A stretch of 64,000 nucleotides of DNA, from the NCBI GenBank assembly GCA_028826165.1, contig JAPDFW010000008.1:33859-97858 (forward strand), given 5' to 3'. The translations under genes were made by a program, and so were the position numbers. Shown here piece by piece: positions 18,735-60,366 of the stretch; position 1 is the first letter of the stretch; each line of letters begins with the position of its first letter. The stretch is from Anaeramoeba ignava BMAN. Taxonomy: Eukaryota > Protista > Anaeramoebae. The notes beneath the pieces were generated by a model. That model searched no databases. It saw nothing but the letters and a program-made list of their open reading frames with translations, and was not told the origin of the DNA.

Positions 18735-20721
18735 ATGAATGAAATTTTATTTTTTGGTCAAAATGAATATCCAAAACTTATCAAAAATAAATCAAAAGGA
18801 ATAACAAAACCAATTCAATTTAAATTTGAAAATGAAAATGAAAATGAAAATGAAAATGAAAAAGAAAAAGAAAAATGAAAATGAAAATGAAAATGAAAAA
18901 CAAATTAAACAAATTTCATCAGGAAACTTTTCAACAATTTTCCTTTTTAAAAATGGAAAAGCAATAGAATATTTAAGAGATTCAAATCAAAATCCTGAAA
19001 AAATTCAAATTGAAAATATTCAAAAAGTGTCTGTTGGTCATGAAAATGAAGCTATTTTAACATTAGAAGGAAATGTATTTGCAAAAGGAAAATATATTAA
19101 TTCAAAAAATCCAAAAGAATTTATTAATATTTCATCATTAATTGAAGATACAAATGATAGAGTAATTGAAGATATTGTTTCTGGTTACAGTTCAATTTAC
19201 TTATTAACTTCAAATCAAAATGTTTATGGAATTGGTTCAAATGGTTGGGGTCAACTTGGTTTGCATTATGAAACACTTCAAAGAACAGAAAAACCAATTT
19301 TAATGATGAAAAATATTTCTAAAATATTTTCAGGAAATACATCAGATTGCATTTTTCTTTTAAATTCAAATCAAGAATTATTTGGATGCGGATATAATTA
19401 TCATGGTCAACTTGGATTAAAAGAAGCAATACTACAGGCAAAAGTCTATAAATTAACTCAATTCCAAAATATTCCAAAAGGCAAAATAATTGATATTAAA
19501 GGTGGATTTAATCATTCAATAATGTTAATTGAAGATGAAGATGAAAATGAAAATGAAAATGAAAATCCAAAAAGAAGACTTTATTCAACTGGAGATTATA
19601 AATCTAATGCACTTGGCAAGGCTCAAGATACAAAAATATTTACTGAAATCAAATCACCTTTATTTGAAAATGATGAAGATAATATTCTTAAAATTTCTTG
19701 TGGACAATATCATAATTTGATTTTAACAACAAATGGGAAATTGATAGTATTTGGAAATAATGAATTTGGTCAATTAGGAACTGGAGATATAAACCATCAA
19801 CCAACTCCAATTCAAATTGAACTTCCTAAATTAAGATTTAATGAAAATATTTCCAATTATCATGTTTCTTGTGGAAATAATAAATCATTTCTTTATTATT
19901 CTCCTCATTCTTTTTCCAATCTTGAAGAAGATTTTATAAAATTATTTGAAAGAAAAGAATTTTGTGATATTTCATTTAAAACAGAAAATGGAGAAATAAT
20001 TGAAGCTCATAAATTAATATTGAAATATAGATTAAATCAAAATCAAAATCAAATTGAAAAACTTCAAGAAATTATTTCAAAAAAATCAATTAAAGAATCA
20101 AATCAAATATTTGAAATGATTTATTCAAACAGAATTATAAATCCAATATTATATTCAGAAATTAAAGAAATTATAAATTCAAATGAAAAAATAGAAGAAA
20201 CAATGAAAAGAATTTATTTAAATGAAAATGAAAATGAAAATGAAAAAGATTTTATAATTGAAAGAGAAGAAAAACAATATAAATTTCCAAAATTAATATT
20301 AATAATGAGAAGTGAATTATATCGAGGAATGTTTTTATCTGTAACAGAAGACAAATCTAATAAAGTTACAGATTATAGTGAATTAAGTAATGAATCATTT
20401 CAAATATTTGAATATTGGATTTATTCAAATCAAATTAAAGATGAAATTGAAATTACACAAGAAATAATTGAAGAAATTCAAATTGGAATTGATTATTTTC
20501 AATTAAATCAAACATATCCAAATTTATTTGATTTATTAATTAATAAATTTAATAATCAAAATCAAAATCAAAATCAAAATCAAAATCAAAATCAAAATCA
20601 AAATCAAAATCAAAATCAAAATCAAAATCAAAATCAAAATCAAAATCAAAATCAAATTCAAATTCAAATTCAAAATCAAAATCAAAAAAAGAATAAAGAA
20701 AAAAATTGTTTAATTTTTTAA
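18735..20721 (+). CDS. RCC1-repeat plus tandem BTB protein, copy B, with a poly-QN spacer and C-terminal CaaX (CLIF)
   Basis: Likely ATG at 18735 (MNEILFFGQNEYPKLIK, matching copy A), with one frameshift in the GAAAAT/GAAAAA tract near 18870. RCC1 GxNxxGQLG repeats, two BTB domains, ending KKNKEKNCLIF. Confidence 0.88.
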
Positions 20722-20740: not shown

Positions 20741-23700
20741 TCAAAAACAAGAACACCCTTTAGATTTTTCATCTTTTCTTTGTGGTTTTTGAGTATTTAA
20801 TTGCTTTTTTTGTTTTGATTTTTTTTCTTGAATTAAATTTGGAGATTCTGAAACTTGAAAAAATTCCATTGCTTCTTCAATTTCTTGTAATAAATTCTTT
20901 GGAATATTATGAACATCCAATTCATTACAATAAAGAAATTTCAAAAAAATTTCCATTGATTTAATACTCAGCATTGATAAATCAGTCACTTGATTTGATT
21001 CATCTTGAACACTAACAAACATTCCTCTAAAAAATCCACTTCTTGCTGCCAAAACTTCTTTATGAGCTAAAAAACTTTTTTCTGTTCCTTTTGATTCATC
21101 TTTTTTGATAATCTTGAAATTTTTGCTTTCGTTTTGTGAATATAAATCCAAAAAACTTTTCTGCAATCCAACCAAATTAGATTTTGATTCAATTTCTTTT
21201 GCACTCATTCCAATTTCTTCTCCAATTTTAAATATTAAATTTTGTGAGTTTGGAAATTCTGCAAAATTTAAATTTCCACTATAAATCCACTTAAGAAATA
21301 TTTCCAGTTCTTTTTTCTCTTTTTTGATACTTATTAGTTTTAAATTTTCCAGATTTTTCCCAATTCTGTTTTCTAAAATGAGTTTATGAGAACAAACTTT
21401 TCCTTCTCTCGTTTCAAAATCAAAATCACACAACTCTTGTCTATCAAAAAATTGTAAATAATCTTGAACTAATGTGAAAAATAAAAGAATTTGAATTTCA
21501 GGATCATCAGTTAATTGAAAAGCTTGAAGATTCTTTTGATTTCCATTTTGATTTAAACAAAAAAAAAAGACAAAAAGTAAAATTTAAATTTGTAAAAAAA
21601 TTATTTTTGAAAGTTTTCAATTTTTTGATTTTACTTCCTATTTAATCCAAAATAAATCATTACTAAATATTCTTTTCTTTTCTTCTTCTTTTCATAACTC
21701 AAAAAAAATTACTTCCTAAATTGAAAAATATTATATTTTCATATTAAAATAAAAATTTAAATAATTAATTAGTTTTTTTTTTTGATTTAAACATTAGGAA
21801 TTGTTGGATCTGCTCCAGCTAAAATAAAAGATGATATAATTTGAATTTTATTTTCCTTTGGCATTTCTGTCATACAAGTAAAATGAAGTTGTGTTGATTT
21901 CTTTGATATAAATATTAATATTATTTATTTTGATGAATTAATTTTTTTTGTTGTTCTTCTTGCGAATTTTTTTGAAAAAGAAAATATTCTAAATGGATTA
22001 CAAACTAATCAAGAAGATTTATTTAGATTAAATTTTTATTTTTGGTTCTTGAAGAAAAATTACAAGATTAGTTTTGTTGACATCATAACCGTTTTTAATA
22101 TATTCTGAAATTTTTTCAACAGATTTTTCTTTGACATACAAACACATTGTGTTCCAATTCTAGTTTTAATTCAATTTTTTAAATTTAATTCAATTTTTTA
22201 GTTTTAATTCCAATTTTTTTTTGAATTAACATTATAAATTAATTTTCTTGCAAAATTTTGCATCATTGTTTTCAAATTATCCATTTCTTTTATTGATGTT
22301 TCTTCAAACATCATTGAGTATTCTTTTGCAAAAGCAAATCCTTCTTTTTTTGTAACTTCTCGATTTTCTTCAAAATCTAAAATTATTTTTTTTTTGGATC
22401 AAAAAATAAAATTCCATTTCTTTTTCTTATCTAAAAATAAAAATAAAAACCAAGTTTATTTCCAATAAGAAGAAATTCAGGTGAAAAATCTTCAGAAAAA
22501 GTTGATTTAAGTTCAGTAATCCATTTTCGAAGATTTTCAAATGTTTGTTTTTTTGTAATGTCATAAACTAATACTATTGCTTTTGATCCTCTATAATACA
22601 TTGGACTAACAAAAATTTTATAAAGAAAAAATAAAAAGCAAAATTTTTTGAATAAATTTTTGAGATTTGTTTTTAAAAAAAGAAATTAAATCACGCCAAA
22701 ACTCGATATCTTTCAACTCCAGCCTAAAAAGAAATAATCAATAAATTTAATTTGATTTAATTTAATTTAATTTGATTTAATTTAATTTGATTTAATTTAA
22801 TTTAATTTGATTTAATTTGATTTGGATTTGATTTAATTTAATTTAATTTAATTTGATTTAATTTGATTTAATTTAATTTAATTTGATTTTAATTTAATTT
22901 AATTTAATTTAATTTAATTTAATTTAATTTAATTTGGATTTGATTTAATTTAATTTGGATTTAATTTGATTTGATTTGATTTGATTTAATTTTAAATTTT
23001 GATTTAATTTAATTTGATTTAATTTAATTTAATTTAATTTGATTTTAATTTTAATTTGGATTTAATTTAATTTAATTTAATTTAATTTAATTTAATTTAA
23101 TTTAATTTAATTTGATTTAATTTTTTTTGAAATTTGATTTAATTTCCAATTTAATTTAAATTTTGGAAAAATTTAAACCTTTTTAATTTGATTTAATTTA
23201 ATTTAAGTTTAATTTAATTTAAATTTGGAAAAATTTTAATTTATTTTTTGAATTTAAAATTTTGGAATTCTGGATTTGATTTTGGATTTGATTTGATTAA
23301 ATTTGATTTAATTTAATTTATTTTGATTTAATTTAATTTAATTTGGATTTGAATTAAATTTTAATTTGGATTTAATTTAATTTGATTTAATTTAATTTAA
23401 TTTAATTTGGATTTAATTTAATTTGATTTGATTTGATTTGATTTGATTTGATTTGATTTGGATTTAATTTGGATTTAATTTGGATTTAATTTGGATTTAA
23501 TTTGGATTTAATTTGATTTGATTTGATTTAATTTAATTTAATTTGATTTGATTTAATTTGGATTTGACTTGATTTAATTTGAATTTTTTTTTGATAATAA
23601 AATACAGTATCCCACAACTCAAGTTTAACTTGTATTTGATCAATTTCATATGTTTTTGTTAAAAAAGATGCGCCAATAGTTGATTGAGTATCTAATTTTA

Positions 23701-23871
23701 TTAATTTTATTTTATTAAAAAAAATTTAAATGATAAAAACGTTTTCTTTTTATTTTAAAGTTTTATTTATTTACCAAGTGATATAACATTAGAAAAAATA
23801 GCTAAACAAATTGAACTTTTTCCAACTGTTGTATCACCAAGAAAAACAACTTTAAAAATTTGAGTATTCAT
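20741..23871 (-). CDS. Rab5/22-like GTPase - ankyrin repeats - BTB - BTB fusion with a C-terminal Cys motif, about 505 aa. Exons 23871-23775, 23691-23606, 22723-22695, 22605-22451, 22376-22231, 22159-22064, 22004-22002, 21900-21793, 21715-21713, 21637-21635, 21532-20741
   Basis: [64 protein letters not shown]. Then IKNGYDVNKTNL-F-KSTQLHFTC...AGADPTIPN-E-E-NLQAFQLTDDPEIQILL, followed by ELCDFDFETREGKVCSHKLIL, AHKEVLAARSGFFRGMF, ending KGCSCF. All ten introns are GT-AG and phase-consistent; total 1518 nt. Confidence 0.85.
22745..23585. repeat. (ATTTA/ATTTG/ATTTGG)n pentamer satellite in intron 2 of the Rab-ANK-BTB gene
   Basis: Seen directly. The intron spans 22724-23605. Confidence 0.9.
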
Positions 23872-54783: not shown

Positions 54784-57700
54784 ATGCCACCAATTAAAGG
54801 AAATCCAAGAAAAACAAGACCTTCAAGAAGAAAAGGAGTAAACTATTAAATTAAATATTAAATTAAATATAAAATTAAATATAAAATTATTTATAAAATT
54901 ATTTATAAAATTATATATAAAATTATATATAAAATTATTTATTAAATTATTTATAAAATTATTTATAAAATTAAATATAAAATTATTTATAAAATTATTT
55001 ATAAAATTAAATATAAAATTAAATATAAAATTAAATATAAAATTATTTATAAAATTATTTATAAAATTAAATATAAAATTATTTATAAAATTATTTATAA
55101 AATTATTTATAAAATTATTTATAAAATTAAATATAAAATTATTTATAAAATTAAATATAAAATTATTTATAAAATTATTTATAAAATTATTTATAGAATT
55201 ATTTATAAAATTATTTATAAAAATTATATAAAATTATTTATAAAATTATTTATAAAATTATTTATAAAATTATTTATAAAATTATTTATAAAATTATTTA
55301 TAAAATTATTTATAAAATTATTTATAAAATTAAATATAAAATTATTTTATAAAATTATTTATAAAATTATTTATAAAATTATTTTATAAAATTAATTATA
55401 AAATTAAATATAAAATTAAATATAAAATTATTTATTAAATTAACATAAAATTATTTTATAAAATTATTTATAAAATTATTTTAAAAATTATATATAAAAA
55501 TTATATATAAAATTATATATAAAAATTATTTATAAAATTATTTATAAAATTATTTATAAAATTATTTATAAAATTATTTTATAAAATTATTTATAAAATA
55601 TTATTTAAAAATTATATATAAAATTATTTATAAAATTATTTATAAAATTATTTATTTCAAATTAAATATAAAATTATTTATAAAAATTATTTATAAAATT
55701 ATTTATAAAATTAAATATAAAATTAAATATAAAATTATTTATAAAATTAAATATAAAATTAAATATAAAATTATTTATAAAATTAAATATAAAATTATTT
55801 ATAAAATTAAATATAAAATTAATTATAAAATTATTTATAAAATTAAATATAAAATTATTTATAAAATTAAATATAAAATTATTTATAAAATTAAATATAA
55901 AATTATTTATAAAATTAAATATAAAATTAATTATAAAATTATTTATAAAATTATTTATAAAATTAAATATAAAATTATTTTATAAAATTAATTATAAAAT
56001 TAATTATAAAATTATTTATAAAATTTTATATTTATAAAATTATTTATAAAATTAAATATAAAATTAAATATAAAAATTATTTATAAAAATTATTTATAAA
56101 ATTATTTATAAAATTATTTATAAAATTATTTATAAAATTAAATATTAAATTAATTATAAAATTATATATAAAATTAAATATAAAATTATTTATAAAATTA
56201 TTTATAAAATTAAATATAAAAATTAAATATAAAATTATTTATAAAATTATTTATAAAATTAAATTTAAAATTAATTATTAAATTAAATATTAAATTATTT
56301 ATAAAATTAAATATTAAATTATTTATAAAATTTAAATATAAAATTATTTATAAAATTATTTATAAAATTAAATATAAAATTATTTTATAAAATTAATTAT
56401 AAAAAAATATTTATAAAATTAGTTATTAAATTAATTATAAAAATTAGTTATTAAATTAATTATAAAATTATTTATTAACTTAATTATAAAATTATTTATA
56501 AAAATTAAATATAAAATTAAATATAAAATTATATATAAAATTATTTATAAAATTATTTTATAAAATTATTTATAAAAATTATTTATAAAATTATTTATAA
56601 AATTATTTATAAAATTATTTATAAAATTATTTATAAAATTATTTATAAAATTATTTTATAAAATTAAATATAAAATTAAATATAAAATTAAATATAAAAT
56701 TAAATATAAAATTATTTATAAAATTATTTATAAAATTAATTATAAAATTAAATATAAAATTATTTATAAAATTAATTATAAAATTATTTATAAAATTATT
56801 TATAAAATTAATTATAAAATTAAATATAAAATTATTTATAAAATTATTTATAAAAATTATTTATAAAATTATTTATAAAATTAAATATAAAATTATTTAT
56901 AAAATTAAATATAAAATTAAATATTAAATTAATTATAAAATTATTTATAAAATTATTTATAAAATTATTTATAAAATTAATTATAAAATTAAATATAAAA
57001 TTAAATATAAAATTAAATATAAAATTAAATATAAAATTAAATTTAAAATTAATTATTAAATTAAATATTAAATTATTTTATAAAATTAAATATTAAATTA
57101 TTTTATAAAATTTAAATATAAAATTATTTATAAAATTATTTATAAAATTAAATATAAAATTATTTTATAAAATTAATTATAAAAATATTTATAAAAATTA
57201 GTTATTAAATTAATTATAAAATTAGTTATTAAATTAATTATAAAATTATTTATTAACTTAATTATAAAATTATTTATAAAATTAAATATAAAATTAAATA
57301 TAAAATTATATATAAAATTATTTTATAAAATTATTTTATAAAATTATTTTATAAAATTATTTATAAAATTATTTATAAAAATTATTTATAAAATTATTTT
57401 ATAAAATTATTTTATAAAATTATTTATAAAATTATTTATAAAAATTAAATATAAAATTAAATATAAAATTAAATATAAAATTAAATATAAAATTATTTAT
57501 AAAATTATTTATAAAATTAATTATAAAATTAAATATAAAATTATTTTATAAAATTAATTATAAAATTATTTATAAAATTATTTATAAAATTAATTATAAA
57601 ATTAAATATAAAATTATTTATAAAATTATTTATAAAATTATTTATAAAATTATTTTATAAAATTAAATATAAAATTATTTTATAAAATTAAATATAAAAT

Positions 57701-60366
57701 TAAATATTAAATTAATTATAAAATTATTTATAAAATTATTTATAAAATTATTTATAAAATTAATTATAAAATTAAATACAAAAATTAAATATAAAATTAA
57801 ATATAAAATTAAATATAAAATTAAATTTAAAATTAATTATTAAAATTAAAATTATTTATAAAATTAAATTAAATTATTTATAAAATTTAAATATAAAATT
57901 ATTTATAAAATTATTTATAAAATTAAATATAAAATTATTTATAAAATTAATTATAAAATTATTTATAAAATTATTTATAAAATTATTTATAAAATTATTT
58001 ATAAAATTATTTTATAAAAATTATTTATAAAATTATTTATAAAATTATTTATAAAATTATTTATAAAATTAATTATAAAATTATTTATAAAATTAATTAT
58101 AAAATTAAATATAAAATTATTTATAAAATTAATTATAAAATTAAATATAAAATTATTTATAAAATTATTTATAAAATTATTTATAAAATTAAATATAAAA
58201 TTATTTATAAAATTATTTATAAAATTATTTATAAAATAATTTATAAAATTATTTATAAAATTATTTTTATAAAATTATATATTAAATTATTTTATAAAAT
58301 TATTTATAAAATTAAATATAAAATTATTTATAAAATTAATTATAAAATTAATTATAAAATTAAATATAAAATTAAATATAAAATTATTTATAAAATTATT
58401 TATAAAATTATTTATAAAATTATTTATAAAATTAAATATAAAATTATTTATAAAATTAAATATAAAATTAAATATAAAATTAAATATAAAATTAATTATA
58501 AAATTAAATATAAAATTATTTATAAAATTATTTTATAAAATTAAATATAAAATTATTTATAAAATTATTTATAAAATTAAATATAAAATTATTTATAAAA
58601 ATTATTTATAAAATTATTTATAAAATTATTTATAAAATTATTTATAAAATTAAATATTAAATTAAATATAAAATTATTTATAAATTTAAATATAAAATTA
58701 AATATAAAATTATTTATAAAATTAAATATAAAATTATTTATAAAATTATTTATAAAATTATTTATAAAATTATTTATAAAATTATTTATAAAATTATTTA
58801 TAAAATTAAATATTAAAATTAAATATAAAATTAAATATTAAAATTATTTATAAAATTATTTATAAAATTAAATATAAAATTAAATATAAAATTATTTATA
58901 AAATTAAATATAAAATTAAATATAAAATTATTTATAAAATTAAATATAAAATTATTTATAAAATTATTTATAAAATTATTTATAAAATTATTTATAAAAT
59001 TAAATATAAAATTATTTATAAAATTATTTATAAAATTATTTATAAAATTATTTATAAAATTAAATATAAAATTATATATAAAATTATTTATAAAATTATT
59101 TATAAAATTATTTATTAAATTATTTATTAAATTATTTATAAAATTATTTATAAAATTGAATATTAAATTAATTATAAAATTATTTATAAAATTATTTATA
59201 AAATTAATTATAAAATTATTTATAAAATTAAATATAAAATTAAATATAAAATTATTTATAAAATTATTTATAAAATTATATATAAAATTAAATATAAAAT
59301 TATTTATAAAATTATTTATAAAATTATTTATAAAATTAAATATAAAATTAATTTATAAAATTAATTATAAAATTAAATATAAAATTATTTATAAAATTAA
59401 TTATAAAATTATTTATAAAATTATTTATAAAATTATTTATAAAATTAATTATAAAATTATTTATAAAATTAATTATAAAATTATTTATAAAATTAAATAT
59501 AAAATTAAATATAAAATTATTTATAAAATTAATTATAAAATTATTTATAAAATTATTTATAAAATTAAATATAAAATTAAATATAAAATTATTTATAAAA
59601 TTATTTATAAAATTATTTATAAAATTATATATAAAATTAAATATAAAATTATATAAAATTAAATATAAAATTATTTATAAAATTAAATATAAAATTAAAT
59701 ATAAAATTAAATATAAAATTAAATATAAAATTAATTATAAAATTATTTATAAAATTATTTATAAAATTATTTATAAAATTATTAATAAAATTATTTATAA
59801 AATTAATTATAAAATTAATTATAAAATTATTTATAAAATTAAATATAAAATTAAATATAAAATTAAATATAAAATTAAATATAAAATTAAATATAAAATT
59901 AAATATAAAATTATTTATAAAATTATTTATAAAATTATTTATAAAATTATTTATAAAATTATTTATAAAATTATTTATAAAATTATTTATAAAATTATTT
60001 ATAAAATTATTTATAAAATTATTTATAAAATTATTTATAAAATTATTTATAAAATTATTTATAAAATTATTTATAAAATTATATATAAAATTATTTATTA
60101 AATTATTTATTAAATTAAATATAAAATTATTTATTAAATTAATTATAAAATTTTAGAGAACTTCAAAAAGAGTTTATTTTATTAGACAACTTATTAGAGA
60201 AGTTTCTGGTTTTGCACCTTATGAAAGAAGAACTATTGAACTTATTAAAAATGGAAGAGAAAAAAGAGCTTTGAAATTTTGCAAAAAAAGACTTGGAACT
60301 CAAAAAAGAGCTAAAAAGAAAAGAGAAGAACTTCAAAATTATGTCTTATCTTTAAGAAAAAAATAA
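54784..60366 (+). CDS. RPL36: 60S ribosomal protein eL36, 87 aa. Exons 54784-54837 and 60157-60366, split by a 5319-nt intron
   Basis: [18 protein letters not shown]|[61 protein letters not shown] at 54838, TAG at 60154-60156, phase 0. Confidence 0.95.
54845..60150. repeat. (ATAAAATTATTT/ATAAAATTAAAT)n 12-mer satellite, about 5.3 kb, forming the RPL36 intron
   Basis: Seen directly. Rare variants (TTAGTTATT, ATTAACT) recur about 780 bp apart, near 56420-56480 and 57200-57260. Confidence 0.95.

Follow-up and report, generated by a model that had tools for sequence, protein, structure and literature searches.

Is the BTB fragment annotated at a minus-strand locus of the protist Anaeramoeba ignava a protein in its own right, or is it the end of a longer protein that begins with a small GTPase? 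We addressed this question in a stretch of 64,000 nucleotides (nt), hereafter the window, which corresponds to positions 33859-97858 of contig C10 in the A. ignava assembly of 42.8 Mb and has a G+C content of 18.5%. All positions below are those of the window unless a contig is named. The original prediction, made from the sequence alone, had linked a Rab domain through ankyrin repeats to two BTB domains at 20741-23871. The GenBank annotation at the locus comprises only a 290-residue BTB fragment, KAJ5080553.1 (Anaeramoeba ignava), which carries the name 'pep-cterm sorting domain-containing protein' and is the only protein that matches the BTB exon at 100%. According to the genome paper, A. 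ignava has an A+T content of 80.65% and its Rab families are greatly expanded (PMC11550330). Our data show that the Rab, ankyrin and BTB parts belong to a single expressed gene of 11 exons encoding 505 amino acids.

Results

A single transcript joins the Rab, ankyrin and BTB exons

A spliced contig from the public run X13 (record 9, 1538 nt, depth 17.4) aligns to the minus strand in the pieces 22723-22695, 22605-22451, 22376-22231, 22159-22064, 21900-21792 and 21532-20712. The other 174 nt, whose first letters match the genome from 23606, are accounted for, by length, by exon 2 (86 nt) and 88 nt of exon 1, which places the start of the contig 9 nt past the ATG, at 23862; at the other end it reaches beyond the TGA at 20741. 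The read alignment covers the gene up to 22735, and exons 1 and 2 rest on this loose end of the contig together with the length arithmetic. Runs X1, X4 and X5 gave short low-complexity matches only and were uninformative.

The gene runs from an ATG at 23871 to a TGA at 20743-20741 in one frame, and the joined coding sequence of 1515 nt contains 505 codons without an internal stop. All 10 introns are of the GT..AG type, nine of them 59-102 nt long and one of 882 nt, the latter interrupting DTAG after the T (WDT/AGVE). The joint of exon 5 with exon 6 (22231 to 22159) is a 71-nt GT..AG intron in phase 0, across which the frame continues. Each exon tested has one 100% locus in the assembly and no intronless second copy was found, hence the contig is derived from RNA and not from a retrocopy. 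The only listed difference between transcript and genome lies at 22338. The genomic A of the plus strand is there a G in the contig, so that an exon-5 codon TTT (Phe) becomes CTT (Leu); this could be due to variation between strains, to editing or to an error.

The encoded protein consists of a Rab-like GTPase (residues 1-171), two ankyrin-like repeats (172-242) with three residues supplied by 3-nt micro-exons, a tandem BTB (about 243-489) and a basic tail ending in CSCF. The sequence motifs quoted in the original prediction are all found in it, namely GDTTVGKS (12-19), STIGASF (36-42), DTAGVE (60-65), GNKLD (119-123), ETSIK (148-152) and a terminal KGCSCF. The two arguments that it had made for one gene also hold. 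Read-through at the exon-5 donor yields ...YNVNSKKNWN-stop, which adds eight residues and no prenylatable Cys to the Rab, and the last exon has no Met until past the first BTB; ankyrin exon 8 does contain one. Its claim of one gene is established by the X13 contig, which joins all exons.

It is this Met in the second ankyrin exon that the GenBank model KAJ5080553.1 uses as its start, and the model then splices 21793 straight to 21532, skipping two GAA micro-exons that are present in the transcript. The model is thus contradicted by RNA in both its start and its 21793-to-21532 splice, and a 290-residue 'PEP-CTERM sorting domain' protein is corrected to a Rab-Ank-BTB-BTB protein of 505 residues.

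Micro-exons of a single codon

Three of the exons are 3 nt long. Within the two gaps that the alignment leaves on either side of exon 8, the only AG-NNN-GT sites are TTT at 22004-22002, which is the sole such site in the 163-nt gap 22064-21900, and GAA at 21715-21713 and 21637-21635. The contig reads GAAGAA in the second gap, the first G having been assigned by the aligner to 21792. With the micro-exons placed at these sites, the introns around them measure 59, 101, 77, 75 and 102 nt, a normal size for this gene. The two GAA micro-exons are confirmed letter by letter and the TTT micro-exon by length only.

Across the window, TAGNNNGTAA is not clearly enriched, with 6 occurrences observed against 2.6 expected and at least 6 in 6 of 100 shuffles. 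The same AG-NNN-GT signature of a micro-exon occurs as TAGAAAGTAA at 404-413 on the plus strand, inside 97-504, in another ankyrin gene.

The Rab domain has lost its catalytic glutamine

Searches against Pfam and the PDB were carried out with the exons separately, and the joined 505-residue sequence was used in local scripts for the reading frame and for comparison with fetched proteins. On direct reading, the N-terminal part is a G domain of the Ras superfamily in which G1 (GDTTVGKS), the switch I Thr, G3 (DTAG) and G4 (NKLD) are intact, while G5 is SIK in place of SAK. All five RabF motifs are recognisable (IGASF, KLELW, RYRVLA, YYRGS and LVYDIT). In the PDB, exons 2, 4 and 5 match Rabs almost exclusively and no Rho protein, with a few Ras, Rap and Rit chains among the weaker matches of exon 5, and the joined domain aligns with ordinary Rabs over residues 5-169 at 113-134 bits (local script).

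The catalytic Gln of switch II, as the original prediction had read, is replaced by Val. DTAGQE has become DTAGVE, with the codon GTT for Val64 at 22717-22715 identical in genome and transcript; at least two substitutions would be required to turn it into a Gln codon. Because the P-loop, the switch I Thr, DxxG and NKxD are intact and the catalytic Gln is a Val, the domain most likely binds GTP and hydrolyses it slowly, as has been described for Rab25. The G domain is not followed by the hypervariable tail and CC or CXC end of a Rab; it runs directly into the ankyrin exon, and the CSCF end comes 334 residues later.

The Rab had also been described as Rab5/22-like. Exon 2, which holds switch I, does have its best PDB matches in Rab5, but exon 4 prefers Rab12, Rab11, Rab31 and Rab22A and exon 5 prefers Rab2, Rab18 and Rab6, so that the Rab5/22 assignment is weakly supported by sequence. 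In the genome paper, 75-80% of the Anaeramoeba Rabs could not be classified (PMC11550330).

The ankyrin linker

Pfam searches with the single ankyrin exons gave no match. Joined locally, the linker of 85 residues matches many repeats in Pfam-confirmed ankyrin arrays of paralogues (P0123, P0076 and P0088) with E-values of 1.5e-15 to 4e-11 in a set of 153 sequences.

The tandem BTB and its predicted docking on Cul3

The last exon alone, modelled by AlphaFold2 with 37 relatives, shows two BTB folds with a predicted local distance difference test (pLDDT) score of 91 and a predicted template modelling score of 0.85. The best whole-length Foldseek matches are the engineered tethered double-POZ chains 4u2m and 4u2n, followed by KEAP1, KLHL26, SPOP-Cul3 and KBTBD2-CUL3, where matches to single BTB domains fall on the second half. 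The tandem BTB that had been read from the sequence is thus upheld by the predicted structure.

About eight cullin loci are present in A. ignava, and P0257 (C58:18000-24600) is a conserved Cul3. Four cullin loci that were considered as Cul3 candidates proved to be Cul1/2-like or Cul4-like and were rejected. The coding sequence of the Cul3 gene appears much less A+T-rich than its surroundings.

Prediction of a complex between Cul3 residues 1-375 and the BTB-BTB exon scored 0.61, compared with 0.01 for the best control, and passed a mark that is reached by 51 of 78 solved complexes and by 2 of 108 mismatched pairs. The runs have at least 63% of their contacts in common, with a partner pLDDT of at least 77. 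On Cul3, the predicted contacts fall on residues 37-55 and 109-121, the canonical H2/H5 adaptor surface, and include the invariant Tyr51, Tyr55 and Tyr117 and the nearly invariant Arg120. On the partner side they fall on the second BTB (BTB2), at residues 166-185 and 223-226 of the last exon.

The basic C-terminal tail

After the last helix of the model there follows a basic tail of about 16 residues and no BACK domain. Ten of the last 45 residues are Lys or Arg, and a Cys stands at position -4 (CSCF). Ends of the form C-x-x-x are found in 13 of the 153 fetched proteins, mostly as C-aliphatic-I-F/M. The polybasic KGCSCF end was read correctly in the original prediction but is not part of the Rab; because relatives without a Rab, such as a neighbouring RCC1-BTB gene, end in CLIF, CSIM and the like, the CSCF end is, judging by these sequences, a property of the BTB-BTB module.

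Origin within a large BTB-BTB family

The BTB-BTB module is a tandem BTB of about 230 residues with the family consensus HK.IL.ARS.LFRGMF. Its relatives number 361 at E<=1e-10; the A. ignava genome has 2296 candidate copies, of which at least 145 are scored. Among the top 150 matches, all 15 named relatives that were looked up are from Anaeramoeba. Identity of our module to 37 relatives is 26-40%, with F139, H157, V182 and Y201 invariant. The N-terminal partners of these modules are ankyrin, WD40, RCC1, Ras and Rab domains.

Two further kinds of GTPase-BTB-BTB protein are found. At least 15 annotated A. ignava proteins, named 'rab8' or 'rab-13' in GenBank and recognised by Pfam as Ras plus BTB, are Rab8-like-BTB-BTB proteins; their genes lie mainly in tandem arrays at C59:153500-168000 (at least nine copies) and C81:344500-352800 (at least six) with a spacing of about 1.5 kb. 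These array genes keep DTAGQ and many end in KKCLIF. We found no paper that describes the C59 and C81 arrays. Ras-like-BTB-BTB proteins of about 390-420 residues, with a degenerate P-loop or DxxG, occur in both Anaeramoeba species, examples being the loci on C126, C62 and C35 (L003-L005) and P0065, P0130, P0152 and P0027, of which several end in CLIF or CSIM. The degenerate motifs are GSANSGRNS and SPAGED in P0065, G.GG.GR and VTAGQE in the L003-L005 open reading frames (ORFs) and DTIIQE in P0130.

In a tree of BTB-BTB modules, the present gene groups with the Ank-BTB-BTB proteins P0004 and P0007 (support 86-96), apart from the Rab8-BTB clade (100/100) and from the Ras-BTB clade of A. flamelloides (100/99). 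The position of the switch II intron also differs between this gene and the Rab8-like arrays. These data suggest that the order GTPase-BTB-BTB is recurrent in Anaeramoeba and probably arose by several independent fusions. The architecture had been thought to be unrecognised in other lineages. The ankyrin insert and the change of Gln to Val are indeed particular to this gene, whereas GTPase-BTB-BTB proteins as such are common in the A. ignava genome.

Features of the gene and its surroundings

The features on which the above rests are collected in Table 1. Convergent to the gene, at 18826-20721 on the plus strand, lies a neighbour with RCC1 repeats and a BTB-BTB module, whose C-terminus is KNCLIF, a CAAX-like box. 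The stop codons of the two genes are 19 nt apart, and the 3' end of the transcript contig (20712) overlaps the last codons of the neighbour. Elsewhere in the window, about 5 kb at 55001-60000 have a G+C content of essentially 0%.

Table 1. Exons, domains and other features of the Rab-Ank-BTB-BTB gene, in window positions
Feature	Position	Strand	Basis
Exon 1: ATG and P-loop GDTTVGKS	23775-23871	-	ORF; contig from 23862; GT donor 23774
Exon 2: switch I and interswitch (STIGASF ... KLELWDT)	23606-23691	-	Loose end of contig matches from 23606; best PDB matches Rab5A/C/B
Intron 2: 882 nt, nearly all (ATTTA/ATTTG)n satellite, GC 0.10	22724-23605	-	GT..AG
Exon 3: 29 nt, Val64 codon GTT at 22717-22715	22695-22723	-	Contig piece without a differing letter
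Exon 4: PMYYRGS ... LVYDIT ... GNKL(D), RabF4/F5 and G4	22451-22605	-	Pfam Ras 5.4e-12; PDB matches all Rabs; contig joint 22605/22695
Exon 5: C-terminal third of Rab, G5 ETSIK, ends KLIYN in phase 0	22231-22376	-	Pfam Ras 3e-6; PDB Rab2/18/6; joints 22376/22451 and 22159/22231
Exon 6: 96 nt, 32 codons, first ankyrin-like repeat	22064-22159	-	Contig piece; joined linker matches ankyrin arrays of paralogues
Micro-exon TTT (Phe), 3 nt, inferred	22002-22004	-	Exactly 3 unaligned contig nt between 22064 and 21900; letters not displayed
Exon 8: 108 nt, second ankyrin-like repeat (QLHFTC...ILAGADPTIPN), with the Met used as start of KAJ5080553.1	21793-21900	-	Contig
Micro-exon GAA (Glu), 3 nt	21713-21715	-	Contig GAAGAA between 21793 and 21532; site AG/GAA/GT
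Micro-exon GAA (Glu), 3 nt	21635-21637	-	Contig GAAGAA between 21793 and 21532; AG-NNN-GT site
Last exon: tandem BTB and tail	21532-20744, then TGA 20743-20741	-	Contig
First BTB fold, about residues 33-116 of last exon (275-358 of protein)	21185-21436	-	AlphaFold2, Foldseek; faint Pfam match only
Second BTB fold, about residues 119-247 of last exon, predicted Cul3 contacts 166-185 and 223-226	20792-21178	-	Pfam BTB 1.1e-14; AlphaFold2, Foldseek; complex prediction
Basic tail ending CSCF, then TGA	20741-20791	-	ORF and coding-sequence reading; relatives end CLIF, CSIM, CTIM and similar

Discussion

A model for the protein and the points against it

Taken together, we favour a reading, which we regard as reasonably probable, in which an expressed Rab-Ank-BTB-BTB gene of exon-level fusion origin encodes a membrane-tethered Cul3 adaptor with a mostly-on Rab. 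In this model the protein would act as a substrate adaptor of a Cul3 ubiquitin ligase, with the second BTB, as the complex prediction suggests, binding Cul3, and the basic tail and a prenylated Cys, if the motif is used as it reads, holding it at a membrane. Recognition or regulation would fall to the other end, made up of the ankyrin repeats and the Rab domain, with the Rab staying mostly 'on' as a bait or regulator instead of cycling and being extractable by guanine nucleotide dissociation inhibitor. As to its origin, exon-level fusion may have placed a Rab domain upstream of an Ank-BTB-BTB gene, in an event separate from those behind the Rab8-like-BTB-BTB and Ras-like-BTB-BTB lineages.

Several points weigh against this reading. 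TBC-type Rab GTPase-activating proteins (GAPs) provide a catalytic Gln of their own, and since they do so Val64 need not prevent GAP-stimulated hydrolysis; the altered G5 (SIK) may weaken guanine binding. The a1 and a2 positions of CSCF are Ser and Cys, which is not a textbook CAAX box. The pass of the Cul3 complex may reflect a memory of solved BTB-Cul3 structures in the predictor, and hence likeness rather than binding. The backbone of the BTB-BTB tree is poorly resolved, with 19 of 35 inner branches open. In A. flamelloides, a search with P0001 revealed no orthologue that combines ankyrin repeats with a Rab, so that neither Val64 nor the architecture can be shown to be conserved. Finally, the transcript evidence consists of assembled contigs from one data set, the source of which is possibly the genome project itself.

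Alternative explanations

The last of these points bears on the view, which we hold to be very improbable, that there are two genes, a Rab-only gene and an Ank-BTB gene as in GenBank, and that the contig is a read-through product or an assembly chimera. KAJ5080553.1 does start at a Met in an ankyrin exon, and contigs cannot reveal where transcripts start or end. However, the canonical phase-0 intron between exons 5 and 6 leaves one open frame, an unspliced Rab would end eight residues on with no Cys for prenylation, and the GenBank model lacks the two GAA micro-exons of the transcript, so that the prediction on which two genes would depend is contradicted by RNA. An alternative that takes the fusion transcript as real, and that we consider unlikely, is that the protein is a near-neutral product of domain shuffling whose Rab is a decaying pseudo-GTPase without a switch or endosomal role. 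The abundance of BTB-BTB copies with exchangeable N-termini (Ank, WD40, RCC1, Ras or Rab on at least 145 copies, 2296 counting candidates) is what such shuffling would leave behind, as are the degenerate motifs of other GTPase-BTB lineages (P0065, L003-L005 and P0130), the missing A. flamelloides orthologue, and the SIK change together with the loss of the catalytic Gln. Decay sits less easily with a frame of 505 codons kept open over 11 exons, three of them of 3 nt, in a gene that is expressed, with G1, the switch I Thr, DxxG, NKxD and all RabF motifs intact and a BTB-BTB part that is predicted to fold confidently and to dock on Cul3.

A different role for the Rab would follow if the protein were autoinhibited in the manner of RhoBTB, with the Rab as an intramolecular lid on the BTBs whose release by a ligand would permit Cul3 binding and self-ubiquitylation. 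The domain order is that of RhoBTB, for which autoinhibition of BTB1 by an atypical GTPase domain has been reviewed and of which one member, RhoBTB3, also has a CAAX end (PMC4931677). Set against this, the GTPase here is Rab-like and not Rho-like, a spacer of two ankyrin repeats replaces the proline-rich linker, no BACK domain is present, and the predicted Cul3 contacts are on BTB2 rather than on BTB1 as in RhoBTB (PMC4931677). On balance we find a lid of this kind improbable.

Wider significance

The membrane-tethered adaptor that we favour may also be viewed at the level of the genus. One possibility, which we think quite unlikely, is that Anaeramoeba has a combinatorial membrane-anchored Cul3 system, in which heads are swapped on a BTB-BTB(-CAAX) chassis and the present gene encodes a 'Rab-bait degrader'. 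The heads would be ankyrin domains (with hairpin residues supplied by single-codon micro-exons), WD40, RCC1, Ras or Rab domains. For an endosomal or phagosomal Rab, effectors or regulators would then be picked up by the GTP-locked Rab domain and passed on to Cul3, and if this were true, maturation of the phagosome or symbiosome would be tuned by it. In any case, a natural Val64 Rab tethered to a putative ubiquitin ligase adaptor provides a ready test of whether recognition of Rab effectors can be wired to degradation.

The published Anaeramoeba genome work stresses the expanded Rab and phagosome machinery, and the A. ignava genome paper makes no mention of BTB, cullin, ubiquitin, ankyrin or micro-exons (PMC11550330). 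Within Anaeramoeba, there appear to have been three or more fusions of a small GTPase to this one Cul3-adaptor chassis. The greater interest lies less in the single gene than in the scale of the BTB-BTB system and in the evidence for micro-exons, for which there is now RNA-level support, at a length of 3 nt, in A. ignava ankyrin genes, and which gene predictors overlook.

Comparison with known systems

The closest parallel in domain order is provided by RhoBTB1-3 of animals and RacA of Dictyostelium, in which two BTB domains come after a small GTPase that stands at the N-terminus and has atypical catalytic residues, and by analogy with these a Cul3-linked function would be expected. RhoBTB3 acts in vesicle traffic (PMC4931677). 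The comparison implies no orthology at the level of sequence. Apart from the Rab-like GTPase, the ankyrin linker and the placing of the predicted Cul3 contacts, the A. ignava protein differs in that BTB1 is compact, without a long insert in the model, and that no BACK follows BTB2. The original prediction of a Rab-based analogue of RhoBTB is reasonable in view of the conserved Cul3 and the predicted docking on it.

Within the same organism, the Rab8-like-BTB-BTB proteins (P0154-P0164 and P0166-P0169) also carry a Rab fused to the same BTB-BTB module, and many end in a basic stretch and a CAAX-like CLIF. They lack ankyrin repeats, are 360-436 residues long, have a Rab of the Rab1/8/13 type (YDFLFK, TIGVDF) with DTAGQ kept, place the switch II intron elsewhere and form a separate, fully supported clade in their BTB-BTB parts. 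The Ank-BTB-BTB proteins of Anaeramoeba (P0002, P0004, P0007 and others) have two to many ankyrin repeats right before the tandem BTB and are the closest relatives of the BTB-BTB part of our gene, at 34-40% identity, but have no GTPase domain. The same Ank-BTB-BTB order is seen in human ABTB1/BPOZ.

For the altered switch II, the natural counterpart is Rab25 (DTAGLE), which has a hydrophobic residue at the Gln position and is described as constitutively active (PMC4359700); it is a stand-alone protein of the Rab11 family with a normal prenylated tail, and the residue is Leu and not Val. A further protist protein that combines a Rab with a BTB, likened here by description only, is the Rab-BTB-BACK-Arf protein of Malawimonas californiana, which has a single BTB with a BACK domain and a second GTPase domain, and neither ankyrin repeats nor a tandem BTB. 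Together with ARF-BTB fusions, it has been cited as an example of how small GTPases were repeatedly drawn into ubiquitin circuits (PMC8358228).

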